The notes under the pieces: generated by a model
Seen by the model: the letters and a program-made list of their open reading frames with translations, nothing else
Database searches by the model: none
Told to the model about the DNA's origin: nothing
Shown here: positions 8,148-37,387 of the stretch, one piece after another
How positions within the stretch are numbered: position 1 is the first letter of the stretch
How the letters are laid out: every line of letters starts with the position of its first letter
Assembly (NCBI GenBank): GCA_004431415.1
Contig: QPMI01000686.1
Span: 1 to 64,000, forward strand
DNA length: 64,000 nucleotides
Reading direction: 5' to 3'
DNA from: Cyanophora paradoxa CCMP329
Lineage: Eukaryota > Plantae > Glaucophyta
Translations under genes and position numbers: made by a program

Positions 8148-9343
8148 CCAGCCGATGGGGAGGCCGGTGCCGAGGGCGCGCTCGGCAACCCACATCAGGT
8201 GCGGCTCCCTCTCTGCGGCGGGTAAACGTCATTGCGGGGGCGGGGGGGCGGGCCCGGGGCGGGGAGCGCGCCGGGGTCGACCCCGAGGTACTTGGCGTGC
8301 TCCGCCACCAGCTGCGCCCCGAGCTCGCCGGGGGCGGGGGTACGTCGTTCGGGGAGAGGGGGGGATGCGGGCCTTCTTCCGCTCGGCGTCGCTGAGAAGC
8401 TGTACCCCGCTCGCGGAGAGGGCCCCTGCCGTCAGCGTCGAGTTCGAGCGCCCCGGCTGGGGGTACGGTGAGCGGAGGGGGGCGGGGGTACGCGGTTGGG
8501 ACCATGGAGCGCGTGTTGGAGCGGGTCGGGGGCGGGGGCGGGGACGGCGAACCTCGGCGCCACCTCCTCGCGGGTCCTCGCGCGCTGCTGGTCCTCTGGC
8601 GGACGCCTGGCGGACGCCTCGATGCGGGCCGCCTCCGACGCCGGCCCCGGCCCGCACGTCAGGCAGCTCGCCACGGCCAGAAGCTGCGCGCCGCGGATCA
8701 GAGCCGCGGTACACGCGCGCGCGGCGCGCTGGGCGAGCGCACCAGCTGGGCGTTCTGGTCCCTCGTGGCGCGGACGAGGCGGTCGGCCTTGGTGCGCAGC
8801 TCGCTCTTCGCGTCGCTGTACCGCTCCGCGACCTCGCAGCTCGGTGCACATCGTGCGGACGTGGTCGATCATGCGCTGCCGCGCCACGATCCGCAGCAGG
8901 CAGCTCCGGACCTCCGGCTCCACCGGAGGCTCCCGCGAGTCGAGGGCCAGCTGCGCCGCCGCCGCGGGGGCGCTGCCCGACCGCTGCACGAGCGCCCGCT
9001 GCTCGATCGCCGAGACGCTGTGGCCGCCGAGCGTCTCCAGCGGGGGAATCGGAGGCGGGCTGAAGCGGGACGCGGCGGAGCCGGCGCCCGCGGGGGCGAC
9101 CACGGCGAGCGCGGTCCGGTCAGCCGCCGACGGGGCCGACGAGGCGCGGGCGGCCCCTGCGCCGATCCCATAGCTCGGCTGCTCGTACACCTCCCGCATG
9201 CACGCCTTCGACGGCAGCCCGTGGACCCAGCGCTGCCGAACGCGGTCAAGCGGGCGGCGCGGACGCGCGCTGCGGGGTCCTCAAACCGCACCTGCACCGG
9301 GGGTGCTGTGCTTAGCGATCGGCAATGCCGAGTCGGCGTCGGC
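8148..9343 (-). pseudogene. Chimeric duplicated gene fragment: 5' part of the 28168 gene joined to the WW-domain part of the 9742 gene
   Basis: 9343-8603 is a reverse-complement copy of ~28150-28878 and 8527-8148 is a copy of ~12971-13358. Introns are retained, the start ATG is altered, and the WW domain is truncated after LPIGW. Confidence 0.8.
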
Positions 9344-14140: not shown

Positions 14141-14921
14141 GGCCCGCCGGGTTGGGGCCCGCCGGTTGGCGTGGGCACGGATGCCCTCGAGCAGCTTTGA
14201 TTTTAATTATTGCACGGTCGTGGGCATGGGTCTCGGTTGAGATTTTCCGGAACGAATTGTTGATGCATCGATTCATTCATAGAGCATGCGCAAGAAACTC
14301 ATTCTTTTGAATGCTAGGAGTTGTTCGCGCTCGCCACATGTATACGAATTAATATTCGAATATATTAATATTAATGCACACGTACATGTGCGCATGCATC
14401 GTGACACGTAAACCCAAGTCAGAAGGACTAGGTTTCCAGTGCCATAAGGCGTGCTCTCAGAGTCTTGCGTGCTGTAGCTGTGCGGCTCCGGCAGGCTGGC
14501 AGTGCAGGCGAGCGGAACTAGTGTGATGACAGAAAGAGCAAGTGCCGGGTACAAGTGTGTCGCCGGGGGATGGACCCGGGACGGGGTACATGAAAAGTAG
14601 TGGGGATCTAATCGCGGCACTCTGCGCAAGCGACGCAGCCGCTAGTAGTGCCAAGTACCGCGAGTAACGCGACTCGGGGCGCCGGCTCCTGACGGCAGAA
14701 AGCCGTGAGGCAATGTAAGCCTGCAGCTATATACCTAATTATATAAGCGCTAGCCTGACACGAGGATCGCCTGAACACGTATACCTAAAGCCTGCAGCGC
14801 TAGCGAGCGCTGCGAGCAGCTGGACGACGGCAACTTGTTGACTGAAGACTTCACTGTATTGATTCCGACCGACGGCGCCGGCGCGCCGCGCTGTTGAGTG
14901 CCCATGGATCCGGAGGGCCCC

Positions 14922-15939
14922 AGCGTGCCGAGAGGCCGCCACGGGACTCCCGCCGTGTCGCCAGTAGCGAGGCGGGGGCTGGTGGACTGGCTCTGCCGTT
15001 GACTCCGATGTGTCGGGCTGGAGATAACGTCGGGCGTCGTCGCTGACAGTGGCGCAGTACGCCGTTGACGACGCGACGCGCTGCTGGAGGCCCGTGGAGG
15101 ACCCCGGCGTGCCGAGAGGCCGTCGCGGGACTCCCGCCGTGTCGCCAGTAGCAAGGCGGGGGCCGGTGGACTGGCTCTGCCGTTGACTCCGATGTGTCGG
15201 GCTGGAGATAACGTCGGGCGTCGTCGCTGACAGTGGCGCAGTACGCCGTTGACGACGCGACGCGCTGCTGGAGGCCCGTGGAGGACCCCGGCGTGCCGAG
15301 AGGCCGTCGCGGGACTCCCGCCGTATCGCCAGTAGCGAGGCGGGGGCCGGTGGACTGGCTCTGCCGTTGACTCCGATGTGTCGGGCTGGAGATAACGTCG
15401 GGCGTCGTCGCTGACAGTGGCGCAGTACGCCGTTGACGACGCGACGCGCTGCTGGAGGCCCGTGGAGGACCCCGGCGTGCCGAGAGGCCGTCGCGGGACT
15501 CCCGCCGTGTCGCCAGTAGCGAGGCGGGGGCCGGTGGACTGGCTCTGCCGTTGACTCCGATGTGTCGGGCTGGAGATAACGTCGGGCGTCGTCGCTGACA
15601 GTGGCGCAGTACGCCGTTGACGACGCGACGCGCTGCTGGAGGCCCGTGGAGGACCCCGGCGTGCCGAGAGGCTGCCGCGAGACTCCCGCCGTGTCGCCAG
15701 TAGCGAGGCGGGGGCCGGTGGACTGGCTCTGCCGTTGACTCCGATGTGTCGGGCTGGAGATAACGTCGGGCGTCGTCGCTGACAGTGGCGCAGTACGCCG
15801 TTGACGACGCGACGCGCTGCTGGAGGCCCGTGGAGGACCCCGGCGTGCCGAGAGGCTGCCGCGAGACTCCCGCCGTGTCGCCAGTAGCGAGGCGGGGGCC
15901 GGTGGACTGGCTCTGCCGTTGACTCCGATGTGTCGGGCT
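14922..15939. repeat. Tandem array of a 184-bp unit, about 5.5 copies
   Basis: GACTCCGATG recurs at 15001, 15185, 15369, 15553, 15737 and 15921; units are near-identical. Confidence 0.95.
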
Positions 15940-16307
15940 GAATGCGCAGCAGGCCGCGGAGCATGCGAGAGACCGCGGGTGCTGATCGAGTGGGCCGCTG
16001 CGGGAGGACGAGTCCAGCCGCCGGGGGGCCTCGCTGCGGAGGGGCAGTGCCGCGATTCGGGCGAACCCTAACACGGGCTGCCCTCACGCAGCGCCTCCGC
16101 CGCCGACGCTGGGCGTGCTCTCGGCTGCTGGAGCCGTTGCTGGCCAAGGACGGCGCTTCGGGCCGAACGTGTCGCTGGGCTGCATTGCTGAACATGGCGC
16201 TGCAAGTCGCCGAGAGGACGGCACGCGACTCCCGCCGTGTCGCCAGTAGCGAGGCGGGGGCCGGCGGGCAAGCGCTGCTGTTGACTGCGATGCGTTGGGC
16301 TAAACGA

Positions 16308-16843
16308 CGACGACGTACGGACACGCAGCCGCTACGCGAGCGGGTGCAGGCCGAAGAGGTCGACGGCAGGGTTGATGATCTTCACGAGCGGGGTGCTCTG
16401 AAGATCGACGACGTACGGACACGCAGCCGCTACGCGAGCGGGTGCAGGCCGAAGAGGTCGACGGCGGGGTTGATGATCTTCGCGAGCGGGGTGCTCTGAA
16501 GATCGACGACGTACGGACACGCAGCCGCTACGCAAGCGGGTGCAGGCCGAAGAGGTTGACGGCGGGGTTGATGATCTTCGCGAGCGGGGTGCTCTGAAGA
16601 TCGACGACGTACGGACACGCAGCCGCTACGCGAGCGGGTGCAGGCCGAAGAGGTCGACGGCAGGGTTGATGATCTTCGCGAGCGGGGTGCTCTGAAGATC
16701 GACGACGTACGGACACGCAGCCGCTACGCGAGCGGGTGCAGGCCGAAGAGGTTGACGGCGGGGTTGATGATCTTCGCGAGCGGGGTGCTCTGAAGATCGA
16801 CGACGTACGGACACGCAGCCGCTACGCGAGCGGGTGCAGGCCG
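16308..16843. repeat. Tandem array of a 98-bp unit, about 5.5 copies
   Basis: CGACGACGTACGGACACGCAGCCGCTACGC recurs every 98 bp; the ORF-track ends at 16332, 16430, 16528, 16626, 16724 and 16822 show the period. Confidence 0.95.
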
Positions 16844-17166
16844 GAAAGACGCTCGACGACAGTCTGCAGGCCGCGGCTGCTGCGTGAGCAGGCGTGACCC
16901 GCGTCCGAAGTGTTCGACTTCGCCGACGCGATTGAAAACATGAGGGTGCCGACTGCGCTGGAGGGTTTGGTCGAGCTGTCGTTGCTTATCGCAAACTGTG
17001 CTGTTGATAGTGTTGTCAACGGCTGCGGCGCCCTCAGAAGCGTGCACGAGCACGGAGATCACAGGGAGCGAAGCGACAGCAACGACAACGCGCGGTGCTG
17101 AAGAGTGCACCAGGTTCCACGTTGTCCGCCGGTGCAACGAGCTGCCCAAAAGGCAGGTCGCTACGA

Positions 17167-17747
17167 GCGTGCCGAGAGGCTGCCGCGAGACTCCCGCCGT
17201 GTCGCCAGTAGCGAGGCGGGGGCCGGTGGACTGGCTCTGCCGTTGACTCCGATGTGTCGGGCTGGAGATAACGTCGGGCGTCGTCGCTGACAGTGGCGCA
17301 GTACGCCGTTGACGACGCGACGCGCTGCTGGAGGCCCGTGGAGGACCCCGGCGTGCCGAGAGGCCGTCGCGGGACTCCCGCCGTGTCGCCAGTAGCGAGG
17401 CGGGGGCCGGTGGACTGGCTGAATGCGCAGCAGGCCGCGGAGCCTGCGAGAGACCGCGGGTGCTGATCGAGTGGGCCGCTGCGGGAGGACGAGTCCAGCC
17501 GCAGGGGGGCCTCGCTGCGGAGGGGCAGTGCCGCGATTCGGGCGAACCCTAACACGGGCTGCCCTCACGCAGCGCCTGCGCCGCCGACGCTGGGCGTGCT
17601 CTCGGCTGCTGGAGCCGTTGCTGGCCAAGGACGGCGCTTCGGGCCGAACGTGTCGCTGGGCTGCATTGCTGAACATGGCGTTGCAAGTCGCCGAGAGGAC
17701 GGCTACGGGACTCCCGCCGTGTCGCCAGTAGCGAGGCGGGGGCCGGC
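17167..17747. repeat. Second direct copy of [~1.4 x 184-bp unit + ~300-bp segment X]; X also lies at 15940-16265
   Basis: GAATGCGCAGCAGGCCGCGGAGC...GAACATGGCG is shared by 15940-16200 and 17421-17680. Confidence 0.9.
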
Positions 17748-17749
17748 CG

Positions 17750-19139
17750 TACAGGCGGCAGCGACCGCAGCAGAGCTCTCTCCGCGCGGCCTCCTCCAGG
17801 TCCCTCCTCCCGCACCGCCTCGCGCCCTGGGCCTCCTCCCGCCCCAGCGCCGCCTCCTCCATCACCTGACGTGACGGCGGCGGGTGGCAGGTTCAGCGAG
17901 GAAGAGAAGAGGCGGGAGGTGGGGGCGGGGAGGACGAGTGTCGTGTGACCGAGCCCCGAGGCGAGTCGGCGAAGTGGGGCCTGGGGCGCCCCCGCATCAG
18001 GCGCTGCAACGCGGGGCGCGCGCCCGTTTGGGCTCGCGAGAGCAATGGAGGCACCAGACGCCTCGACCCGCCTCCCGATGCCGGTCCAGATGACGTGTAC
18101 GCCTGCGAGCGGCTGAGGGGCGGCGCGAGAGGAGGGGGGAGAGAAGTGACCGTGATTGGCGGGACCGACCGCGGGGCACGAATGCAACGCGGCTAGCAAC
18201 ACGGGCCCGTGAGTGGGGGCCGGCTCGAGCGAGGGCGAGGCGGGAACTGCCCACAGCTGCAGCTCCAGCTCCCACGTGCAGAGGCCGGTTCTCGGCGGTT
18301 CTCCCGCGCGTCCAGCGACGTCATCCCCGCCCCGCCCTTGGCCGGGCCGATCAGCGCCGCCGTCCGCCGGTCCCCCAGCCCGTAGAACGCCAGCTCCAGC
18401 CGCTGCCGGCGCTCACAAGGGGCGGGCGGGCGCGCCGGGGCAGAGGAGGGCGGACCTCGGCGCCCTCGACGCGGCGCCCGACGCTCCAGGTCCCGCGTGC
18501 CTTCGCGGGCCGCGGCCGTGGGGCCCCATGCTCTCCTCGAGCCGCCCCCTCGCCGGCTCCGGCGTCCCCAGCGCCCTGCGGGTGCGATCGGGGGCGGCAG
18601 CGGCCGGCGCCGGCGACCGCGCGGGGCCGGCGCGCACGCGTGGAGCATGGGCGGCAGGCTGCTGCAGGAGCGCGAGCCGTCGATCGAGTGCGACGTGCCC
18701 CCCGGCGAGCGCGACGGGTACGCCTCCTCCACCAGGCGCGCCGCGAGGGGTATAGGGATCGGGATGGGCGCCGCGCTGTCCCGCGAGACCACTGCGCGCG
18801 GAGGGGCCGCTCGACGCCCGAGGACGGGGCGGCGGCGCCGGCGCACCGCGGCGGACGGCTTCGTAGGAGCGGGCGAAGGAGAGCGAGCGGCCCTGGTGCC
18901 CGTAGCCTGGGTCCGCCGAGGCGCGGCCGCCCAAGCGCGCGGCGATGCCGCCGGCGTGGCGGGCGAGGGCGCGGCCGGCGGCGCTGCCCTCGCTGCCGTC
19001 GCTGTCCGAGCTCGTGATGCTGCTGCCGCTCGCCTCGCCCTCGCTCGCCCCGGGGCTCAGCGCCGCCAGCAGCGCCGCCGTCGGCCCCGCCCGCGCCCGC
19101 TCCCGCGAGGGCGTCCGCAGCGCGCGGAGGCGCGTTCAT
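17750..19139 (-). CDS. Hypothetical protein or pseudogene, apparently cut at its 3' end by the repeat block
   Basis: Coding-like frames (SGSSITSSDSDGSEG; RLVEEAYPSRSPGG; VMEEAALGREEAQG) run straight into the 184-bp repeat at ~17750. Frames are inconsistent. Confidence 0.3.
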
Positions 19140-19566: not shown

Positions 19567-22500
19567 CTAGCACCGTGGGGCCGAGGCCCCGGGCGACTGC
19601 GACTGCAGCACCCTGGAGCCTTCGTTCGAGAAAGTGAGGAAGCGGCCGCTGAAGTCGGGGTCGTGCAGGTAGACTCGAGGGGTCGTCGGATCGTGATTTA
19701 GCGCGTAGCTGAGCGGCAGGAACGCGCCGGGCGAGCCAGCGCGGGTGGAATGATTCGACGAAGCGCCGTCGGTGAACAAGTTCGGCAAGCGCCTCTGAGG
19801 GTCGGGGTCGTTCGGGTCCCCGTCGGAGTAACGAAGAGGGTGGACGTCGTCAATCTCCGTGTTGACGCGCAGCCGAGAACCGGGCGCATTGTAGATTTCG
19901 GTGATCCAAGTGTTCAAGGTCGTGCGCACTTCCGGGCTGTACAGAGCTTCGCCGTAAGCCGCGAAGAACGGGTCGTACCTGCCTGAATCGGGACCCGCCG
20001 AAGCTGACATAGCCGGCGTTATCATGATGCGCCGATGCACCAGATCCTCGAACTGGGCGATGCCCATCTCGACCTCGCGACGCTCGACGGAAATAGGTTC
20101 CGCCTGCGCTCCGAGATGCACATACCCGCCTTCGGAAAGCTTGTCGGCATGGAGGCACGCTTGCGTGCTGGCAGGTATGCGGAATGCGTGGGGGTACAAG
20201 GTCCGCTGGCGTTGCGACGAGGCGCTCGAAGACGCGCCGGGCTGCCAAACTTGGCGGGCCAGGTGGGTCAGGGTCGCCTGTAGCAACAGGGCCGTGAAGG
20301 CGGATGCGAAGTGGCCCGGCGGAACACGCGTCGAGTTCGGGAAGAACAGCTGGTACCAACACTGAAGTGAAGTCGAGAGGATAAGGCGCCCGTCTCCATC
20401 GTGGCAGAAGTGAAGGCTGTCCGCGTTGCGACGGATGTAGTCGTTGAGGATGCGGATCAGCGTCGTCGGGATGGGCTCTTGCTTCGTGGGGAAGGCGCCG
20501 TAGAGCGCGAGAGCCTGCGCCGCAAAGTAGCTGTAGCCGTACACCCAAGCGACGACCTTGACGGGGAACGTGATGACAGCGTGACGCGCTGCGGACGCGG
20601 GAGTCCCGGGCGCGAGTAGAGCCCACACTCCGCCCGGGCCGACGTAATTGTCGTGAAGGATGGGGAAGCCGTCGAAGTCATCTGGATGCGAATCGGTGCT
20701 ACCGAGGAGAGTTGCCCACGTCGCCATGTTGTTGGGGTCGAAGACGCGGATGTAAGATCCCGTGTAGTCTTTGCTGAGGAGTTTGCCGACACGCGGGCCG
20801 TGCTGGTCAACGTTATCGTTGGTCAGATGAGTGATGAAATCGACAAATGGCGGGGGCGAAGTGAAATCAAGAGGTTGGCTGTCCCGCCGAGTGAGCTTGT
20901 TGTTGTTCAGCGCAACAATGAAGAAAGAGAATAAGTTGCTCGTGGCGTGTTCGTTCGATGGATATATGCAGAGATCTCGGAATTCAAGTCTCGAACGATT
21001 GACACGGCGCATCTCGTCAAATCCAGGAATGCCGTGGCGGTACGGGTTCACTTCTGGGTCCGCCAGATGCCGGACGCAGCGGTCAAGTGCCTGCACGAAA
21101 CCACGGAGGCGAATCTGGTTGAGGAGGTACAGTGATCTGAATTTCGGGTTTCGTTTCATGGATCTGTCCACTTGCCAATCGCCGTGAAGAAGGTACTGCA
21201 TGTGCGCGTCGCCGAGAGGGAACTCGTCGTTTGGTTCCACACCGAGAGACGTCTGCCGTGCACTTGGAGGACGAGCCCACGAGCCCAGCGGCGTCGGGGC
21301 TCCCCACATTTCCGCAACTACTGTCGCTGCCCACGGAGCATGGCGCAGATTCTCCTCCATGGCGGCGCAGAGCGCCGTGACGAAACGCTCGTTGGCTTTG
21401 AACGCATGGGGCTGTTTGTCGACTGTGAAGGTGACATCACGGTCGAGTGCGGAGGCCACGCTTGCACTCATGAACGGCGGGTTGTGCAGGAGGATCTGGT
21501 GCGGGAAGAACGGGCGATTTGGATCATCTTTCCACAGTGCGCCGCCGAGACGCAGACGGCTGTACATGTTCTCCGCTGAGACAGATGGGGCAGCAGGGAT
21601 GCCAGGAGCAGCCGTAGACGTCGAGCTCGATGCAAGCACAGGGCTGGACCGTGGCCTGCCGTCATGCTGGTCGACAGTTGCAGACAGGCGGGTCGCCCCT
21701 GGCTTCACGAACGGATGAGCGTCGGATGCTTGCGCTGTAACGCCTTGGGAATGCGCATCGACAGTCGACATATTGCCAGGAAGCGGTTGCGGAAGCTGTG
21801 CGACGCCTCACATGAGAAAACAGATCTTTGCAAAAACACAGCGCTGAGCGTACCTCAACATTCGGCCCCTTCTCTGCTCGGCTCACCTCACTCGACACAG
21901 CAACGCTCGGCACACAGCTCTTCTCCTTTACCGCCGCCACGGCACGTGCTACGTCGCGAAGCTGGCTCTCCAGCCGCGCAAGCTCCATCTGCACTGGCTC
22001 GCTGCTTGGGTGCAGTGCTGCAGCCTCGCGAAGAGCTGCCACAGCCAACTCAATATTCCCCTGCGATTCCAGCGCCCCGGCCAGCATCAAGAACAGCTGT
22101 AAAAAACATAAGCACGAAGAAAAAAGGGGCGATGGCTTTTCTGACGCACATGCTCAGGCGCGGGAAGGCTGGCAAGTTTCAAGCTGTCGATAGCAGATCG
22201 TGCCCATAGCTCGCGCGTCTTCGGTTCCATAATGCAATTCTTCAGAACGTCAGCCGCGTCCTCGCGAGTCAAAGGAAGGTCGCCAAGGAACTCGACAGCC
22301 TCGTTGGAGCGTCTTTCGAGAAGAAGAAGTCGAGCGATAAAAATCTTCGCCTGCAGCGATGACGAGGGTCGCACGAATTCGTTGATATGGACGGCATCTT
22401 AGCAATAATTCGTACCAGAACAAATTTCTCGGCGGCCATAGGAGCTAGTTGGTGATCAGGTGGCACTCGATCAAGCACACGTCGCCACAGCGCATAAGCT

Positions 22501-25500
22501 GATCGAGCCTCCCGCTCTGCATCTTCGCGGCGGCTTTTCTGGAGGTACCTTTCCGACCTTTCCATTGCCCCCGAAGCCTCTCGAGCCAACTTCTTTGCCT
22601 GGAGCTCCGCGTGCTTCTTCCGGAAGGCCTCGTCTCGTGGGAGCACTTCCAGAGCTTCCCGAAGCACGACTTCGGCCTCGTCATCCTTGCCCAACTCCTC
22701 CATAGTTCGGATGAGCACCGAATACGCCTGCACGCGGGTTAGCTGCTTGAAACGAAAAGCGATGCCGAAATAACGCACGGTGCGCGATAGGCGAGCATGG
22801 CTCGGTCCGATTCTTCTCCAAAGCTCGACCGAGGCCCGCCCCCAGGCGACGACGATCTCGCGAGGGGCGCCCTTTTCGATCCCGACGGATGCGGCCTTCT
22901 GCAGCAGCTCGGCGCGGACGATGTTGCAGTCCCGCTCCAGCTCGACGTGGTCGGACTGGTGCGCGCGCGCCGCCCGATCGAACTCGCCGGCGAGCGCTGT
23001 GGCGGCGCGCTCGTACGCTGCAGGGTCGGCGTGCTGCTCCCTAAGAGCCTTTTCGGCCCGCTTCAAGCTCCAGGAAAGACCGCCGACCTCCCGTGCAGCC
23101 TCCAGCTCTCCGGCCCTGCGATATTACATCAGGGCGATGCAAACCTATCTGCATCGAAGCGATTTCTCTCACAGGTCGTAGCAGTCGGCTGCTTTCTCCA
23201 CGTGCCCGCCTCCCGCATCTCTGTAGAGGCCGGCAGCGCTCCTGTACAACTGTTGACGGATCTCGGAGTTGCTCTCCGACGCGGCACATGCATTCAACCG
23301 ATTCGCCGCACGCTCGCATGTCAGCCGACGCGACCTAAGCGGACGACGAAATGTCGGCTGGCGAGCGAGCGAGAATGCACAGCATAAATAGCCGAGGGAC
23401 TCACGAAGAGATGAGTTCGATCGAACCACCCGAGCTGGAAGACGGCATAGTGCCGAGGCATTCGTGGAACAAACGCACGGCGCCCACGTACAGCTTTTGA
23501 CGCAAGGCGCCATCCCGCTCCGACTCTGCCCAGCGAGTCATTCATCAACAGCTTCGATGCCAGCCAGCACGCTCAAAGCGCACCGGCCTTGTGGCATTCC
23601 CACTCCGCTCTGGTGAATACTGCCATGAACTCGTCGCCGGCGTTCTGGTAGGCTCGGGCCGCCATCTCGTACGTCCGCTGGCCCAGGAGCTGATCCCCAA
23701 GGCGCCTCCAATCCTCGGGCGCCTTGCCGCTGTCTCGCCCCCAAGCCACGCCGCGCTTCTCGCCTTTCTCAACAATCTGCGCGAGCACATCGCACCCGAC
23801 AGGGATGCGAACAGGAGATAGATTCTTCACCTGGACAACTTCTGCACTTTTGAAGAGATAAAACATGGGGTTCCTTGCATCCGATTCGTCGAATATCCTG
23901 CAATTGAAGTGGTTGTCAGCATCGAAGGTCATCGCCGCCTTGTCAAGAAAATGCTGAAATTGCACCAAACAGCAGCCTTGGCGCGGGTGAGCGCAGTGTA
24001 AAGCTGAACGCAGGAGATCAACAGGACGAAAGGATGGCGCTCTTACAAAAAGTGATAACACCTGCTTCAGCTCAGCAGCCACAAGCCGGTTCGCCAGCGG
24101 ATCGAAAGGTTTCACGCGCTTAGGCTTACTCGTTCTCTCCTAGGACGATCAAATGATCATGATTAGAAAACAGTACCCGACAATCCGCACAATTGAGATT
24201 GACGAACCTCAACGGGTTGACCGGCGGCCTCGTGAGCGCGCCTCAGAACCTCTTCCTCGGCTGCAGAGACTGCCTCCCGCCACATGGATTCGTCGGGCTT
24301 CGGCGAATCCGCGAAGAAGTTGAAACTGCACCGGACACGGAAGACATCAAGAGAGGCAACAAGCAAATAAAATTGGATAAAGAAGCCGCCGCACATAAGA
24401 ACATCCTCGAACTCCAGACCCTTCGCCTCCTCGACGGTGAGAATGATTGAAGCGCCGAGAAGATTGTTTAGCTGCTTGATGCGTTTCTCCCTGACTTTCG
24501 AATTCCCGCGAATGATGACGACCTGGTCCGCGCCCAACGAATTCTTTCCGTCTACATCGGCGAAGAGGAACGATGCGAGGCTACTCTCGTCCTTCCCCAG
24601 CAGAAGCAACGGAGGCGGGCCCTCGCGAAGACCTGGTGCCTCAATTAGTAGTCGTCGAACACCAAGTCGTGTAGTGAAGCCGGCAATGTTTAACAATAAA
24701 ATCGTTCTCACCGGCGTCCCGCGGAAGATCGTCGTCGAGCTCCTTGGGAAACAGAGTCTGGAGCATGTCGACGGCGACCGCCGCACAGCTGAGCGTTCCG
24801 GAATGGCACCTGTAGCTCTGTATGCGCACAAGATCAGCCACAGAATTGAATGCCGGTGAAAATGTAAATGCGAACAAGCGAGAGATTCAGTCGTCGAAAC
24901 TGAGCTCGATTGGTCGGGAGGATTGTGCGAATCATCGATTGGAGGTCGCAGAACCGGAACACAAGGCCACGGGCAACAGTTTGGACCGTATCACCGCAGA
25001 AGAAGAGGCTGCTGGGATTTACAGCGACCATAGCCATCAGGCTCAGCTCCGCCCCGGTAAAGTCCTGTACCTGCAACGTGCAAACATATTCGATGCATAG
25101 AATGCTTGAACGAGAGGCTTCGTAAGCTCGCCTCGTCGACGATGATCTCGTGCACACGAGGCCCGCGGAAACCGTCTTTGATCCCGCGAAAGATGTGATG
25201 AGCAATATCCTGAAGTCTCAAGCTTGTGAGAGTTTGAAAGACAGGCCGAAAAAAAGTGGAAGACCGTGATAACGTATCTGTACTTCTTATCTTGGCTCTT
25301 GAGCTTGCGGTACCGCTCGTACATCTTGTACACAAGCTCTCGTTGCTTCTCGCTGGCCATGCGCGATCGCGTCTTCCCCATCTCCTGGTACTTCTCCAAG
25401 CTCGCGTAGCCTTCCGGAGAACACAAACTCTCCGCGCTGCCACTGCGTTGCGGACGTGATAAAGCATGAGATATATGAGAGCGAATCTTCAGAATTACTT

Positions 25501-27863
25501 CAAGCTGCGACTCACGCAAGCAGGGAAAGGAACTCAGTCCAGCAGAGGAGCGGGTGCGGCGCCTGTCGAACGTCCTCTTTCGAAAGCGCCTGTCGGATGC
25601 CCTTTGGCGGCAGCCAGAAACTCGCCTCGAAGATGTCGTAGTCAATTTCCTCCTCATTCTGCCGCGGGAAGAATGACCGCGCTAGCATGCCGTCGAGCAG
25701 CCGGAGCCAAGTGCGCCGGGAAACTGAGATCGCGTTCGGCATTTCGCGGGGCTACCTACAGCAAAAACGCGCACCGAAGAGCGGATACATGTCGTCTGTG
25801 ACTTCGGCGAGGGAGGCGAAGTTCTTGAGTTCTTCATCGCCCGAGCCGATCAACTGTTCAGTCTCCTCCTGTCGGTCACGTTCGCTCTCCGGAGCGAGCA
25901 GGAGGTGCCTCGGTTCCTGCGGGATGCACTGCTCAACCGAGAGAGAACAGACGCAGGGAGACGCCATGAACGCACCAGGTTGCTCACGTCCTTGCGAACC
26001 TTGTCGAGCAACAGTGCACTTTTCGTGATATAAACGATCCGCAGGTGACCAGAGGGAAAGAGAGGCTCCCCCTGGCTTTGGGACCAATAAGCGTGGTAGC
26101 GCGCCCACAGCCTAAAGAATGCATATGTGAGGAGACGCAGATTCAAATAGGATTGGTAGCGGACCGAGCGACCGCGCATGCCGTCTTCCCCGTGCCCGAG
26201 CGGCCACACACCGCCAACGGTCCATTCGCGCAAATGATGTCGAGCTCGCCTCTGCGTATCGAAGCTCTTATGGGGAGAAGTGTATAATAATAATAAAGTC
26301 ATTGTTGCACCTAATAGCCTTCTGCTGGGCAGGCGAAAGAGAGGGGTCTGATTCTCGACCTCCCAAAACCTCTTTCGCAATGTGTTCAGCACGCTCCCTC
26401 ACTTGCTTGAGAAAAGGAAGATCTGCACGCCGCGTGAATTACGCTTCAATGCTAAAGATGAAAGGCAAACGTAGAAATTGACCAGATTCCGCTAAGCTCA
26501 AATCGACAGACTTGCCCTCGAGCGTCGGTTCGGAGCCCGGCGCGGACGGTGCAAGCACGTCGAGGGGAAGCGTGTAGTTCGGATCAAACACCGTCTGCTT
26601 GGGCTGGAACATTCCGAGTGGCAGAGACCGCGGCAGCCGGGTGAACCCTATGACGGGTTCGCGCTGCGGAGGCCGTGGCCAGCTGCAGTCGGCTAAAGTT
26701 GATCGCAGTAGCTTTCGACTGCGGAAGACATCCGATATCTGCGAGACCAGAGGTCCGACCTTGTCGTGGTGCCGCACACCCCTGCCATAGTTACGTGTCA
26801 GTTACAGCGAACAATCAGAGCAAGAACTTCGGCGTCAGTACCATATTATAATCTTGTCACGCCAGCATCCATACAGCTCTGACCAGTCCCAGACCTGCGC
26901 CGCAGCTTAGCTAGGGCAATTTCTGTGGGGAATTGGATGAGCATAACTTCCAACGCACCTCTTCCCACAGCAAACGGTGCCCGCGGATCTCATTTCTGTC
27001 CCCCATATAGCTCTCAAAGAGGGCGAGCCCCTCCTCCGCCTGCCGCCGGCAAGCGCGCATCAAGGCGAGAGGGGGGGGAAAGGGGGAAGGGCGGGGGGAG
27101 GCGGAATAGGGTGGAAAGGGGGGGCGGGGGGGGGGGGGGGGGGGGTGGGGAGAGGGGGGAGGGGGGGGGAGCTGGAAATCGCACGTGTTTCACGGGTTTC
27201 GCATGATTGGCACGCGATCGCTCTTCTCGACCCTTCATGAAGCGGATAATGAGACGCAGGGCGGAGCGTTGGATTGCTTGCCCAAGACGACGCCAGTTCT
27301 TCCGGCACGTTTGCGCGATTCGAATCTCCCTGCGGGCAGCGAAGGTGAAGCTCAATACGTGTTCTATGAAAGCTTGCAGCACAAGCTGCAGGCGGCAAAG
27401 CTTACCATAACTTCCGCTCGGACTGCGCATGCACGTCTCTTTGCTGTAGTTCGAACAACTCCTTGACGATCACTCTCAGATCCGCATCGCCATCGCCCGC
27501 GAGCAGCGCGTCGAGCGGATCGGCGTCGTCGTCCACAGCTGGATCTGCTTGGTCGACGTCGCCGTTCGGATCCAAATTTGATCCGTGCACGTGATCAGCG
27601 GCGGCGGCGGCGGCGAGCTGGATGCGGGGGAGCGCGGGCAGGCCGCCCGAGGAGGTTCCCCCCGACTGCTGGGACAGCAGAAACTGCAGCGGGTCTCGTG
27701 GCACCGCGGGGGGCTGAGTTTCCTGCAGCTGTCTGTCCACGGTCGCTACCGGGGACGCCGGTCGCGCAGCTGCGGTTCCGGTCTGCGGCTGCGGCTCCTG
27801 ACCCTGAGGCGCGAGAGCGTCCCCCGAGGACGCGCGCCCACGATCCAGAAAGCCTCTCCTCAT
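19567..27863 (-). CDS. TRANK1-like UvrD/SF1A helicase with an N-terminal RelE/ParE-like domain, TPR/helical repeats and a large unknown C-terminal domain
   Basis: Walker A GRSGTGKT (26182-26205), Walker B IIVDE|VQD, FFCGDTVQTVARG, SYRCHSG, LTVEEAKGLEFEDV and ELKQ|LYTALTRAK. TPR-like exons at 21850-23800. A phase-0 intron joins the 2.2-kb last exon in frame. Confidence 0.88.
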
Positions 27864-28167: not shown

Positions 28168-30195
28168 ATGTCGCTCACCACAGCACCACCGGCGCAGGTG
28201 CGGTTTGAGGGCCCCGCAGCGCGCGTCCGCGCCCCGCCCGCTTGACCGCGTTCGGCAGCGCTGGGTCCACGGGCTGCCGTCGACGGCGTGCATTCGGGAG
28301 GTGTACGAGCAGCCGAGCTATGGGATCGGCGCAGGGGCCGCCCGCGCCTCATCGGCCCCGTCAGCGGCTGACCGGACCGCGCTCGCCGTGGCCGCCCCCG
28401 CGGGCTCCGCCGCGTCCCGCTTCAGCCCGCCTCCGATTCCCCCGCTTGAGACGCTCGGCGGCCACAGCGTCTCGGCGATCGAGCAGCGGGCGCTCGTGCA
28501 GCGGTCGGGCAGCGCCCCCGCGGCGGCGGCGCAGCTGGCCCTCGACTCGCGGGAGCCTCCGGTGGAGCCGGAGGTCCGGAGCCGGCTGCTGCGGATCGTG
28601 GCGCGGCAGCGCATGATCGACCACGTCCGCACGATGTGCACCGAGCTGCGCGTCGCGGAGCGGTACAGCGACGCGAAGAGCGAGCTGCGCACCAAGGCCG
28701 ACCGCCTCGTCCGCGCCACGAGGGACCAGGACGCCCAGCTGGTGCGCTCGCCCAGCGCGCCTCGCGCGCGTGTACCGCGGCTCTGATCCGCGGCGCGCAG
28801 CTTCTGGCCGTGGCGGGCTGCCTGACGTGCGGGCCGGGGCCGGCGTCGGAGGCGGCCCGCATCGAGGCGTCCGCCAGGCTGCTCTGCCACGAGACGCCCC
28901 GCCCCGGCCGCGACCTCCGCAGGGAGCAGGCGGAGGCCTGCCGGAACCTCGCCGCCCAGCTGCAGGGTACCCGCCATCCCTCCCCTCTCCAGAGCGCTTC
29001 CCTCAGCGTACCCCGCAGAGGACCAGCAGCGCGAGATGTACGAGCTGGGCCAGGACGTAGAGCGCATGCGGCGGAGCGGCGCGAGTAAGGACGAGGCGCG
29101 CCCGCACTCTACTCCTGCGGGCTTCCCGTACCCGCCTTCCCGTACCCGCACTCTAACGACGGGTACCCAGATCATTGCCGCGCTCCGAAGCGAGGTGGGG
29201 GAGTTCAGGAGGCGGGGCGACAGGTGCGGGCTTTCCCTCGCGTACCCCCGCCCCGCGCGTCCCCACCGTCCCGCGCAGCCGCGACTGGCTCGTGAGCGCG
29301 ATGCAGAGGGACATTTCCGCGCTGCGGCAGTGCGCTTCCCTGTACCCCCGGCCCGCCCAGCTTCGCCGCCCCCAACTCCTCCCCTCCCCTCGTCAGGTCC
29401 GACGCCGAGAACCGCCGGGCAGCGAGCGAGATGGCGGTGCGCTGCCCTGTACCCCCTTTCTCCTTTTCCCCGTCCCCGCCCCCCTCGCCTTCGGACCTGA
29501 TGCCGTACCCCAGAGCGCCCTGGAGGCGGCGTCACGCCGCATCTCCGAGCTGCGTGAAGCGGAGGCCGCACTGCGGGTACGCGGCCTCTCCTCACTTGAA
29601 GGAGAAGCACTCCGCTCACGCCGTGGCGGCGCAGCGGGGCCTGCAGGAGAAGGACGAGGAGATGGAGCGGGCGCAGGCGGCGACGCGGGCGGCGGGCCCC
29701 TCGCGGGCGGGCAGCGCCGGGGGCTCGGGGGCCTCGAGCGCGGCGGGGAGCCCGAAGCCGTCCTCCTCCGCGTCCCCGCCGCCCTTCTCCCCCTCGACGC
29801 AGTCCCTCTCGCCGGAGGCGATGGCGCGGCTCCGGCGGATGGACGCGGAGCTGAGGGCCGTCGCCCTCGAGAACCGCAACCTGCGGCGCGAGCTCGAGGC
29901 CGCCCGCGCCCGCCTCTCCGGCGCCCCCTCCGAGGCCCGCGGCCCCGGGCGGCCCGCGCCCCCCGCCCCCGAGGCGCCCCCCACCGTCAAGAAGGCTGAG
30001 AATCCGCTTCCCCTCGACGCGAAGAGCCCCCTTCCCCTCGACGCCTACTCGGCCGCCATCGCAGCTGCTTTCGGGCTGCACCTCAGCCCTCAGAGCCACA
30101 AGTTCAGGTTAGCCGACGATCCCACGGCTGGCGCCTCCCCGCCCGCACAGGCGGGTCGGCCCCTTGGCCAGCCCCCCGTTGCCGTCGCGAACTAG
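28168..30195 (+). CDS. Hypothetical coiled-coil protein
   Basis: MSLTTAPPAQ|gt start; exons RLLRIVARQRMIDHVRTMCTELR and RLRRMDAELRAVALENRNLRRELE; stop at 30195. Confidence 0.6.
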
Positions 30196-30273: not shown

Positions 30274-33493
<3,220 letters not shown>

Positions 33494-33838
33494 TAGCTTC
33501 GCATTTCAATGGCAACAAGGCTGATCCGCCCGCCCCACGCTGCCCCAGCCCCGCCTGCACGTTTTCTCCCCTCCCGAGTTTTTTCGTGTTGGCCCACCAC
33601 CCTATTGGCACGCCGCTCCCACATGCGGCGCTGCTTCATACGCGTGGGCAAGAGGCATCCATGGTACTCAGATGGCAAAGGACCTCAATCCTTAGCTGTC
33701 TTGTAAAACATGGGCACAAACCCTCCATCCCCCAACCCTGTCCATCTCACTCTTCCCCAGCAAAACGCCTCGGCCTGCCGACTGTAGAACTATACAGAGC
33801 ACTATCTAGGAGATCAGCTAGGGGAGGTGGGGTCTCCC

Positions 33839-35520
33839 TCAGCCCTCCATCCCCCCGGCCTCCTGGTCCGCTTGTGCCCACGCCGCGAGGGTCGTCCGCT
33901 CTGCCGCCGAAAGCCACTTGTAGTTCAGCTCCTTGTCCCCAAGGAGGTAGCACTGCGGGGGCGCGTAAGAAGGGGCCGCAGGCTCGCTCCGGCTCGAGCG
34001 TGGAGCCGCGCGCCTTCACTGTCATGTCGGAGGAGGCGGTGAAGAGGTAGGAGCCGGCGAGGAGGATGGGGTTGAAGTAGATCTTCGTGTCCGCGAAGGC
34101 GTGCACGCGGTCCTTGTGGTCCGTCGCGAAGCCCCGGCACCGCTGATGCCCGTCCCACACCTCCGGCCCCGGCCGTGAGCCCGGCGAAGGAGGGGGGGCG
34201 GGGCGGGCGGGAGGGGCCCGGGGCACCCTAACGGTCCCGTCTGCCGAGGCCGACACGAACTGGTCCGAGCCGGTGAAGCCCGGGTACAGCGTCGTCACGG
34301 GCTCGCTCGCCCGGTCCGCCGAGGTCCCCACCGTGGAGTCCTCGATGACCTTGTGCGGCCTGCGACGGGGCACCTGAGGAGACCCCGAGACCGGATCGAA
34401 TCGGGCGGCCGCACCTCAGGGCCTCGAAGTCTCGCCACTTCTTGATCTTGCCCACGTCCAGCAGCTTCACCTGCTCGGCGAGGCGCGCTTCAGGCGCGCC
34501 GGGCGGATCGAGGGGAGCAGCGGCGCGCCTTGGAGCCGGCGGCGACGAGGGTGCCGCCCTGCACGGCGAGCGCCCGAACGGGCGACTCGTACTCGGCCAG
34601 CAGGACGATGCACTGCGGCGTCCGCGGGTCGTTCCCGTCCAGCTCTCCCAGGTTCCACACCTGCCGCCCCGGGTCAGGGACCCGCGGAGTCGGCCTGGAG
34701 GGCGCGGGCGGCGGGCGCGCCTTGACGCGGCCGTCGTCGGCGCCCGAGAAGAGGAAGTCCTTGTAGGACGCCAGGCACCGGATGCCGCCCTCGTGCGCGT
34801 CGCTGATCTTCTCCAGCGCGAGCAGCCGGCCCCCGGGTTCCACGCTCCATATCTGGCCCCCGCGTGAGACCGCGCCGCCGCGCGCAGGACCGCTCGCGGC
34901 GCACGAAGATGGAGCCGTCGTCGCTGCCGCTGACGAGGAACTGCCCGACGAGCTTGACCGCCGTCACTGGCCTCGTGTGGTCCCGCTTCGTTTCCACACA
35001 CACGCTCGCCTTCGGCTTGCCTACCTTCCACACCTGCGCCCCCACCCGCGCCTCAGCGACGCGGCGCCGCGACCCGCCTCAAAGCAAAAAGCGCGCACCC
35101 TTATGCTCGCATCCTCGCTGCCGCTGTACAGGTAGCCGCCGTCCGCCGCCGAGTAGCACATACTGAGCACTGCGCCCGTGTGTCCCTGGCGCCGCGGGCT
35201 TAGCTGCGGGCGCGCGGGCGCTGCCACGGCGCAGCGGAAGCTACCTTGAGTGTGTCCCTGCACTTGAGGTCCGATAAGCTCCACACCTGCGCCCGGATAT
35301 GAGGCCGGGCGGAGGAGCTCGAGCTGCAGGCCGGCGGGGCGCACGCGGATGGTCTTGTCACTAGAGCCAGAGTATACCATGCCTGAAGCCGCTATCACAG
35401 CATTCACAGACGCCTTGTGCCCGACGAAGATGTACTGCGCTCCAGTGAGCAGGGGCGGGCAGGCAGCAGAGAAAGGCCGCGCGCCTGGCATCTCAACCGC
35501 TTGGCCATGGAGTCCGCCAT
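33839..35520 (-). CDS. WD40-repeat protein
   Basis: About seven GH..S.S.D..I/V+W repeats (GHKASV..SGSSDKTIR, GHTGAV..SGSEDASIR, DHTRPV..SGSDDGSIF and others). The start could lie further upstream. Confidence 0.88.
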
Positions 35521-35584
35521 CGCCCGCTTCGTGAAGGAGCCTTGCTTGGCAAAATTGGCTGGTGTAAATCCTGTACCCGCAGAA

Positions 35585-37387
35585 ATGGAGCACGCGTTCA
35601 TCCCCACGCCTCCGGCGCCCGTAGCGTCGCGGCGGACGCTCGTTGGACATGGTAGCACCCCGATTGCTTCGCCGCGCGCCCAACCAGCACCGCGTCAGCC
35701 GGCGCCCGCCGGATTTTGGTGCACGAGCGCGGCCAGCGATCGGCGCATGGAGGCGGTCTCTGCGCCCTCTACAAGCAGTGCTAGTCGGAGGCGATTTATA
35801 GCAGCGGTCGGGGGAGCGATCGCCGCTGTTGCGCTGCCCGCGATGACACCTTCAGCTTCTTCAGCGGAACTTGCGGTCGGCGAGCGCGAGTACATCAGCG
35901 CCGAGGTGGAGAGGCTAGCAAGGCAGGGAGCCGCGGCCTTCAATGCCAAGTACGCCCCCCTCGCCCGCACGGCACAGCCCCGCGTACGCGCACGCTGACG
36001 TTGCACGTGCGCCTCGCAGGGACTTCGCCAAGGCTGAGGCGGCGTGGACTAAGGTCATTGGTACGCAATCAACTCTATACGCAACAAGCCGCTCCCGCGC
36101 AGGCGCCGCGGCGCGACCGCCCGGCCGCCGGCGCCAGCGCTAGCTGCAGATCTTGCGCGTGCGGCGCGGCCGGGCTCACGCGCCGCTGACCGGAGGGCCC
36201 GCAGAGCTCATGCCGAACAACACGCTCGCGTGGCGGAACCGCGGGGACGCGCGGCTCGACCGGAAGGACTTTGCGGGGGCCCTCGCGGACTACGAGGAGG
36301 CCATCCGCCTCTCGCCCTCCTCCATGCCCGACCTCTACGTCGGCCGCGGCCTCGCCTACGAGGGTGAGGCTAGGGCCTGTTTGCAAGCGCGCGCCCAAGC
36401 CCGCGCTGACGCGCCCCCCGCAGGCGTCGACCGCTTTGACAAGGCGCGGGACGACTACACCACGGCCCTGCAGCTGCGGGTGCGCCGCGCGGCGCCGTGC
36501 CCGGCCGAGCTCCCCCGAGTGGAGCGTCCGCAGGAAGAGGCGGTGGATCCCGTCGCGCTGGTGTACCGCGGCAACGCGAGCGGCTCGCTCGGCGACTGGG
36601 CCGCCGCCGAGGCCGACTACATCGTGCGCTCTGCCAGGCTCTTCCGGGGGGGGCCGCGCCCGCGCCTCCAGCTCCAGTCCCTGACGCCAAAGGGGTCCCT
36701 ACAGAAAGCCGAGGAGATCTTCTCGGGGGCGCGGTACGAGGACGCCGCGACGACGTGCCGAGCCAACCAGGCGAGCGGGCCAGCGAGCATGGGGCCAGGC
36801 CGGGCCAGGCAAGGCTGACCTTCAGGTGGGGCGGGGCAGGCTCTGGCGGTGTACGAGCAGGGGAGGCGCGAGGAGAGCATCCGCCTGATGAAGTCAGTCA
36901 TCAGGTACCCCCCTTCGCCGTGCCCCGCCCCGCCCCGAGAGGGCTCCCCGGCGCCGCCCCCGAGCAGAGCCGCTGAGCGCGTGCGCAGGAGAGACCCGGG
37001 CTTCGCGGACATGCGGATCGCGCTGGCGGCGGCCTCGTGGCGGGACGAGGACTACGCGGAGTCCATCAAGCAGTGGGCGCGCCCGCAGCCGCCCCACCCT
37101 AGCTCCCCCGCCACCCCTCCGCTTTGGTCGAAGCCTCACACGAGGGCGCTCGCAGGATTTCAGCTGCGACAACATCAAGGTCGGCTGCTCCAAGTACCGC
37201 GACATGGACTGGGTGCGCGGCCTGAGCGCTCTGCGCTCTGGGGGGCCGCGTGCACGCGACCGCGAGCTTGAGGCTGATCGGCAGCCGCGCCGTACTCCGG
37301 TGCCAGGTTCGGAGGATACGGAGGTGGCCCCCCAGCCTGGCGAACGATCTCGAGAGGTTCTTGGCGGAGAAGGCGGGGGCAAAGTAG
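35585..37387 (+). CDS. Plastid (thylakoid-lumen) TPR protein of a cyanobacterial-type family ending RRWPP
   Basis: Transit peptide MEHAFIPT.., twin-Arg signal SRRRFIAAVGGAIAAVALP..ASSA, TPRs (AWRNRGDAR..ALADYEEAIRL), then PGFADMRIALAAA and KYRDMDWVRRIRRWPP. Confidence 0.85.

Follow-up and report, generated by a model that had tools for sequence, protein, structure and literature searches.

A RelE/ParE-like domain encoded by four small exons at the N-terminus of a UvrD-type helicase-TPR protein of Cyanophora paradoxa

The window analysed here, a stretch of 64,000 nt of GC-rich eukaryotic DNA from the glaucophyte Cyanophora paradoxa CCMP329 (GenBank assembly GCA_004431415.1, contig QPMI01000686.1, positions 1 to 64,000 of the forward strand), carries on its minus strand a multi-exon gene for a large UvrD-type helicase. 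RelE-type toxins are regarded as prokaryotic, stand-alone RNases that are controlled by antitoxins. A preliminary description of the window, made from the sequence alone, placed a RelE/ParE-like domain, spliced from four small exons, at the N-terminus of this helicase. We found that the domain is closest to the ribonucleases RelE, YoeB, YafQ and HigB and that it forms an N-terminal module before a UvrD/PcrA-type superfamily 1 (SF1) helicase and a tetratricopeptide repeat (TPR) region (Table 1). We are highly confident both of the RelE fold of the domain and of the structure of the gene.

To define the exons, the minus strand from 26400 to 27500 was read in three frames and the contexts of the junctions were inspected. 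The exons were searched one by one, the protein models in the database served as their joined versions, and the computation on the joined phase was limited to a count of stop codons. The four exons were recovered as they had been described: the introns between exons 1 and 4 (145, 64 and 60 nt) all have GT donors and AG acceptors, the phases are consistent, every peptide that had been quoted is present, and the junctions are identical to those of an existing model of this gene (EukProt tig00021720_g23177.t1, 1253 aa, here P0001). The phase-joined reading of exons 1 to 4 contained no stop codon (count 0). Two Trp codons are split by introns. Exon 3 ends with the TG of one of them, which the first G of exon 4 completes, and the Trp that opens the domain is assembled from the TG of exon 0 (end 27405) and base 27329 (G). 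The domain product is ∼105 residues long, and the Walker A motif lies ∼110 residues downstream. Intron 1 is mostly filled by a tract of ∼110 nt (27060-27170) that is G-rich on the plus strand and C-rich on the coding strand.

Table 1. Exons and protein parts of the helicase gene, followed by other features of the window
Feature	Position	Strand	Content and basis
Exon 0	27405..27863	-	Start codon 27863; low-complexity N-terminus, P0001 residues 1-153; P0001 maps at 100%
Exon 1	27329..27185	-	β1, α1, α2; P0001 residues 154-201; acceptor cccgcag/G, donor CAC/gtgcga
Intron 1	27040..27184	-	145 nt, GT..AG
Exon 2	27039..26959	-	β2-β3; acceptor ggcag/GCG, donor GAG/gtgcgt; Glu of LFES, Arg of HRLLWEE
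Exon 3	26894..26842	-	Loop and beginning of last strand (CWRDKIII); acceptor gcgcag/GTC, donor TG/gtactg; ends mid-Trp codon
Exon 4	26781..26484	-	End of last strand, His motif GVRHHD, helix α3, Pro/Arg-rich linker toward helicase; acceptor ggcag/G
Walker A exon (GRSGTGKT)	26164..26253	-	Exon map; weak P-loop family matches for the piece alone
Rest of UvrD/PcrA-type SF1 helicase core	23965..26113	-	∼13 exons; Walker B VDEVQD, GDTVQT, UvrD_C EEAKGLEF, motif VI LYTALTRAK
Post-helicase helical/TPR region	22231..23896	-	TPR_14 match; tblastn of paralogues
746-residue open reading frame	19570-21807	-	Directly downstream of helicase gene; no Pfam match
Inverted duplication, arms	8605-9270 and 28221-28879		At least 660 nt, 94-99% complementary, arms ∼19 kb apart
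Long tandem repeat arrays	∼14750-17900		Translations recur with ∼98 nt shift at 16300-17060; larger units at 14.7-17.9 kb
PLP-enzyme-like open reading frame	30918-33500	+	Possibly threonine synthase; judged by eye
WD40-like open reading frame	34200-35700	-	Judged by eye

The same gene model ties the small exons to the helicase. The helicase stretch 24166-24990 (minus strand), used as query against the protein library, retrieved 25 proteins, of which P0001 was the best. P0001 maps at 100% to exons 0-3 and the start of exon 4 and continues through ∼27 exons to 21708, so that one protein carries both the domain exons and the helicase, as had been claimed. In seven further Cyanophora models (P0002, P0026, P0004, P0005, P0006, P0008 and P0009) the four pieces are contiguous and keep their order. 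When the exons were compared one by one by BLASTP against the 25 proteins as database, P0002 was matched with E values of 3e-19, 2e-12, 8e-9 and 2e-24 and P0005 with E values of 4e-9, 8e-7, 1e-5 and 2e-9, matches that are far beyond chance. In the domain, P0001 shares 72% identity with P0026. In an alignment of seven family members from Cyanophora (A1; overall identity 34-67%), ∼20 positions are invariant, including Glu, Arg and Asp residues of the sheet, and exon 1 is conserved among the paralogues.

P0001 itself needs small repairs, none of them in the domain. It removes an extra intron within exon 4 (26759-26664, 32 residues), which is probably a modelling error because P0002, P0026, P0004, P0005 and P0006 retain those residues. 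Its last exon (21708-21794) looks arbitrary; good exons stop at 22593, and the paralogue P0003 aligns as far as 22231 by tblastn. This doubtful intron and doubtful 3′ end, together with the origin of P0001 and its paralogues as predictions of one pipeline, could be taken to mean that the small exons are chance pieces of open reading frame, or parts of another transcript, that resemble RelE by coincidence. We consider such an artefact scarcely credible, since seven paralogues preserve the order of the four pieces, the domain runs on into the helicase both in fungal models and in cyanobacterial open reading frames (ORFs) that have no introns, and the pieces together form one confidently predicted domain.

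The protein downstream of the domain is a UvrD/Rep/PcrA-like SF1 helicase, with Walker A and Walker B motifs and both the N- and C-terminal UvrD domains. In P0001, Pfam detected UvrD-helicase (25.2 bits, cutoff 23) and UvrD_C_2 (31.4 bits, cutoff 27.4) as well as TPRs at the C-terminal end. The profile made from A1 matched UvrD, PcrA and AddA in a PDB sequence search, and residues 312-619 of a structural model of P0026 (see below) matched PcrA, Rep and UvrD with Z scores of 10-11 in VIA-align. PADLOC reported only a generic UvrD similarity of GajB type.

In contrast to the helicase, the N-terminal domain escapes standard annotation. As the preliminary description had remarked, it is invisible in the ORF lists, and Pfam is equally blind to it: neither the single exons nor 12 full-length family members gave a RelE/ParE match. 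PDB sequence searches by phmmer or hmmsearch with exon 1, with the A1 profile and with two fungal proteins found no toxin, and a BLASTP comparison of exon 1 with E. coli RelE gave only a 10-residue match. Homologue searches with A1 and with the domain region of the fungal proteins added almost nothing new. These negative searches weigh against a relationship with RelE. Because Pfam-A hidden Markov models (HMMs) and PDB sequence searches find nothing, the similarity is detectable only when profile is compared to profile.

We therefore turned to hhalign and compared a domain profile of 11 sequences (8 from Cyanophora and 3 from fungi) with a RelE profile built from E. coli K-12 RelE and 110 of 120 fetched RelE-family proteins that were 80-110 residues long. 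The combined profile matched RelE over 70 columns with a probability of 95.4% (P 1.9e-8, score 47.9), pairing domain positions 2-83 with RelE residues 1-74. The Cyanophora sequences alone (85.5%, P 5.7e-6, score 35.5) and the fungal sequences alone (74.9%, P 2.6e-5, score 32.7) matched in the same register. In this alignment exon 1 corresponds to RelE residues 1-40, with the motif NWRRLG in place of the EWRKLG of RelE. When the profile was reversed, the match fell to 0.1% (P 0.68, score 8.5), and in 200 column shuffles the probability did not exceed 11.4%, with a mean score of 11.0 (standard deviation 2.4) and a maximum of 21.9 compared with the observed 47.9. By hhalign with these shuffle and reversal controls, the domain has significant sequence similarity to accepted members of the RelE/ParE superfamily. 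The whole-protein A1 profile, aligned to the single RelE sequence, also had its best local match on β1-α1-α2 in the right register, at a probability of 9.6%.

The fold was examined by AlphaFold2 (AF2) modelling followed by structural searches, the kind of check that had been proposed for the spliced domain. As the domain of the P0001 gene has no single-piece reference, we folded the paralogue P0026 (619 aa) from an alignment of 11 sequences. Residues 113-231 of the model form β1-α1-α2-β2-β3-β4-α3 with block values of pLDDT (predicted local distance difference test) of 65-89; the counterpart of exon 0 is predicted to be disordered save for one helix immediately ahead of the domain. When the whole model was searched with Foldseek, helicases were found, and the sole small-domain targets were RelE1, Thermus thermophilus RelE, RelE2, YafQ, an archaeal RelE, YoeB and Cami1 (probability 0.72-0.96; target-normalised template modelling (TM) score 0.59-0.71 for the stand-alone toxins). 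In VIA-align, residues 110-215/233 matched a toxin of a Streptococcus pneumoniae toxin-antitoxin (TA) module (Z 7.8), YafQ (Z 7.5, 87/90 residues, root-mean-square deviation 2.4), Cami1 (Z 7.3), RelE (Z 7.1, 87/89 residues), HigB1 (Z 7.1) and an archaeal RelE (Z 6.8), and these matches cover 86-88 of the ∼90 residues of the targets. The algal evidence for the fold thus comes from a paralogue, within a 619-residue model, and not from the P0001 domain folded alone, which counts against the assignment.

A homologous domain from the cyanobacterium Trichodesmium was folded alone from a 15-row alignment (A4), giving a mean pLDDT of 85.4 and a predicted TM score of 0.76. Almost all of its top 50 Foldseek matches were toxins from the RelE/ParE superfamily, with YoeB first (E 2.6e-3, TM 0.74). 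In an unbiased VIA-align comparison with 48,161 chains, 17 chains reached Z of at least 8 and all of them belong to the RelE/ParE superfamily (the S. pneumoniae TA-module toxin, 10.3; YoeB, 10.1 and 9.9; YafQ, 9.6; RelE, 9.3-9.6; ParE, 9.2 and 8.6), whereas unrelated folds gave Z of 5.7 or less. The P0026 model shows the elements that define the BECR fold, namely β1, two helices and an antiparallel meander of 3-4 strands, often followed by a C-terminal helix. The claim of a RelE/ParE-like fold is therefore borne out by the profile link to E. coli RelE and by AF2 models of P0026 and of a cyanobacterial homologue that match RelE/ParE toxins.

Since ParE structures are among these matches, and since the language-model neighbours of the fungal domain include a ParE_like cluster beside a RelE cluster (which we regard as a lead only), the domain could instead be ParE-like and act on a topoisomerase or another protein and not on RNA. 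This is very improbable. The top structural matches are the RNases RelE, YoeB, YafQ and HigB, and among sequence profiles only that of the RelE family proper gave a significant link. ParE toxins, moreover, are not known to have the conserved basic residues or the His that follow the last strand.

The domain is not confined to Cyanophora. In fungi it precedes the helicase in proteins of Tulasnella (P0018 and P0039) and Serendipita (P0027 and P0014). The fungal loci L001-L003 yielded no domain-only reference because introns lie inside the domain. Another large UvrD-helicase gene of Serendipita vermifera (L003:9571-10098, 2290 aa) begins ∼1 kb after P0027, and the family stands in tandem there. 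A protist-like, AT-rich JGI contig (L008:1268-4111) contains one ORF in which a SEN1/Upf1-like helicase (AAA_11/AAA_12) is followed by the RelE-like domain and then by the beginning of a UvrD-like helicase, and which is a two-helicase variant of the family; the contig also carries transglutaminase-elicitor genes. A divergent copy of the domain was found on a marine contig (L004). The Cyanophora domain HMM barely detects either of these last two copies.

A scan of prokaryotic genomes with the A1 profile gave 19 loci, mostly in cyanobacteria (Pannus, Scytonema, Calothrix, Nostoc, Trichodesmium, Okeania and Microcoleus) and including one in a Heimdallarchaeon. In 15 of the 19 (14 bacterial, mostly cyanobacterial, and the Heimdallarchaeon; L012-L024, L029 and L030) the gene is a single intron-free ORF of ∼870-1575 residues with an N-domain of ∼100 residues, a Walker A motif at ∼205-230 and a UvrD core. 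TPRs were clearly matched by Pfam in three of the four prokaryotic ORFs scanned, namely the cyanobacterial ones. These proteins share with the Cyanophora protein the layout, a helicase alignable over ∼600 residues, the distance from N-domain to Walker A, the fold and the positions of Glu, Arg and His. Their N-domains, however, are distant in sequence and have neither the opening Trp nor the WRxLG motif, and their genes have no introns. The existence of bacterial fusions of RelE to SF1 helicases, which had been stated in the preliminary description, is upheld by these cyanobacterial proteins and by one RelE-helicase fusion in a 2026 preprint, a helicase of bacteria that stands next to Tiamat and has a RelE-like domain at its N-terminus.

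The domain profiles of the three groups are linked to each other in steps. The fungal profile matched the cyanobacterial one at 83.6% (P 8e-6, 99 columns) and the Cyanophora profile matched the fungal one at 67.4% (P 5e-5), while the combined Cyanophora and fungal profile matched the cyanobacterial one with P 0.007. Against a common origin with RelE, the cyanobacterial profile compared with the RelE profile gave only 0.3% (P 0.22), which is not significant. The cyanobacterial branch is tied to RelE through structure and through the chain of profile matches.

We then considered whether the domain retains an active site. In the joint alignment, RelE Arg61 and YoeB Arg65 are matched by the Arg of HRLLWEE, which does not vary within Cyanophora or within the prokaryotic set. 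The Glu of LFES aligns with RelE Lys52, and lies on the strand neighbouring that of the Arg61 equivalent; every Cyanophora and prokaryotic sequence has it, as does one of the three fungal ones. Directly after the last strand there is a His (GVRHHD in the P0001 gene, DHDD in cyanobacteria), at or next to the columns of YoeB His83/Tyr84, which is present in 8/8 Cyanophora, 13 prokaryotic and 2/3 fungal sequences. The acid-base set of YoeB we take to be Glu46, Arg65, His83 and Tyr84, and the arrangement of Glu, Arg and His in the family presumably resembles the acid-base sites of YoeB and of microbial RNases. The correspondence to YoeB is partial: the column of Glu46 is occupied by Lys, a different conserved Glu stands on the next strand, and a single-sequence hhalign comparison with YoeB gave a weak match (P 0.05).

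Several observations weigh against catalysis of the RelE type. RelE Lys52 is replaced by Glu, Lys54 by Tyr or Trp and Tyr87 by Gly, so that most of the catalytic set is lost. The Arg81 column varies and holds Arg only in P0001, P0002 and P0026. The distant relatives L008 and L004 do not have the central Arg. Of the residues that define RelE proper (Lys52, Lys54, Arg61, Arg81 and Tyr87), the family keeps Arg61, in agreement with the preliminary description, in which the central Arg was said to be retained while other catalytic positions differ. The same replacements, the variable Arg81 position in the paralogues and the two relatives without the central Arg would suit a domain that has the RelE fold and is no nuclease, i.e. 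a degenerate module that binds the ribosome, RNA or a partner and positions or regulates the helicase. A missing antitoxin would be easier to tolerate if the domain were harmless, and inactive members of other toxin folds provide a precedent. We nevertheless think a mere binding module unlikely, though it deserves to be taken seriously. The ∼20 invariant positions in the seven Cyanophora members, with the Glu, Arg and Asp of the sheet among them, and the placement of the Glu/Arg/His set where YoeB-type enzymes hold their catalytic residues both speak for a maintained site, and RelE-superfamily RNases use differing active sites (PMC3710099). RNase activity is plausible because of this YoeB-like arrangement combined with RelE-fold RNases that have alternative sites, but taken as a claim by itself it falls somewhat short of an even chance.

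Compared with type II toxins such as RelE, YoeB, YafQ and HigB, the Cyanophora domain has the same fold and topology, profile homology (to the RelE family), the central Arg and a His near YoeB His83. It differs from these stand-alone toxins of ∼90 residues with an adjacent antitoxin in being the N-terminal module of a eukaryotic protein of >1200 residues, in being split over four exons and missed by Pfam, and in having no equivalent of RelE Lys52, Lys54 and Tyr87. The P0001 gene is monocistronic and contains no antitoxin-like exon, and we found no adjacent antitoxin gene of the kind that accompanies type II toxins. Multidomain RelE proteins such as the CARF-RelE protein Cami1 are known defence effectors. 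Cami1, which is also among the structural matches, and the Tiamat-linked helicase resemble the Cyanophora protein in that a single polypeptide combines a RelE-fold module with a sensor or motor, but the partner in Cami1 is CARF whereas the partners in Cyanophora are a UvrD-type SF1 helicase and TPRs. Neither a 2025 survey covering RelE/ParE toxins of one or several domains nor a 2026 BECR classification mentions a fusion to a helicase, UvrD or TPRs. The order of effector, NTPase and repeats is, in our own comparison, also that of NLR/STAND-type immune receptors. There, however, the central NTPase is NACHT/NB-ARC and not an SF1 helicase, and the likeness is one of layout and not of family; the only NACHT signal was a sub-threshold P-loop match in the fungal protein P0018 (18.8 bits, cutoff 26.7). 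Animal TRANK1 (TPR and ankyrin repeat-containing protein 1) is a large protein of unknown function with a UvrD-like helicase and TPRs. Pfam found TPR families but no ankyrin repeats in P0001 and five paralogues, which therefore do not show the ankyrin and TPR combination of TRANK1, and within the literature library searched no paper connects TRANK1 to RelE or UvrD.

The 746-residue ORF directly downstream was considered as a member of the helicase family and rejected, as nothing in it resembles the helicase paralogues; it is perhaps a gene of its own with a single exon. The arms of the inverted duplication, whose ORF translations are nearly identical, flank the helicase gene and the repeat-rich region that lies upstream of the gene. 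The PLP-enzyme-like and WD40-like ORFs look like ordinary genes.

The neighbourhoods of the cyanobacterial genes bear on a possible role in defence. At the nine loci inspected they are mixed, with housekeeping genes in several, which speaks against a defence function. A Type ISP restriction enzyme was found in one locus and a pPIWI_RE RNase H gene in one locus. At two of the nine loci only, in Calothrix (L014:3076-3291) and Nostoc (L024:3075-3293), a 72-residue ORF of the Xre helix-turn-helix type lies ∼150 nt upstream of the gene and could be a regulator or an antitoxin-like partner.

The explanation that we favour, and regard as reasonably probable, is that a RelE/ParE-superfamily domain on a helicase-TPR protein acts as an RNA-cutting effector. 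The domain would be an endoribonuclease that uses the conserved Glu, Arg and His on the face of the sheet where RelE and YoeB cut mRNA; at a minimum it may serve as a module that binds RNA or the ribosome. The timing of its action and the choice of RNA would be set by the ATP-driven helicase together with the TPR array. Since there is no separate antitoxin gene, any control of the domain would be intramolecular or exerted through partners. The paralogue expansion and the occasional defence-gene neighbours in cyanobacteria would point to a role in conflict or RNA surveillance over one in housekeeping, and E. coli RelE is able to cut mRNA on eukaryotic ribosomes, according to the passage of PMC11980606 that cites Andreev 2008. 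RNase activity, gating by the helicase, sensing by the TPRs and defence are all suggested by the architecture, by the expansion of the paralogues and by analogy. Because no antitoxin gene was found and the cyanobacterial neighbours are mixed, we only infer the role in defence or surveillance and the gating by helicase and TPRs, and we hold a function in defence to be doubtful.

At its broadest, the finding might concern a widespread prokaryotic and eukaryotic family of helicase-coupled RelE-type endoribonucleases that act on translating or foreign RNA. The TPRs would sense a trigger, the UvrD-type motor would engage the RNA and the RelE domain would cut it, perhaps in the ribosomal A site, and the expanded Cyanophora paralogues would form a repertoire for innate immunity that the alga inherited from cyanobacteria or shares with them. 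We offer this as speculation with rather little chance of being correct in full. What is at hand is a RelE fold built into a large eukaryotic helicase-TPR protein, conserved in paralogues, fungi, other protists, cyanobacteria and an Asgard archaeon and missed by standard annotation. It joins the growing number of conflict modules from prokaryotes that eukaryotes have put to use again. If animal TRANK1 were to carry a RelE-type module as well, TRANK1 would be an RNase-armed helicase. For an uncharacterised family of UvrD-like helicases, the domain provides a hypothesis that can be tested by mutation, namely that RNA may be cleaved by a Glu/Arg/His site.

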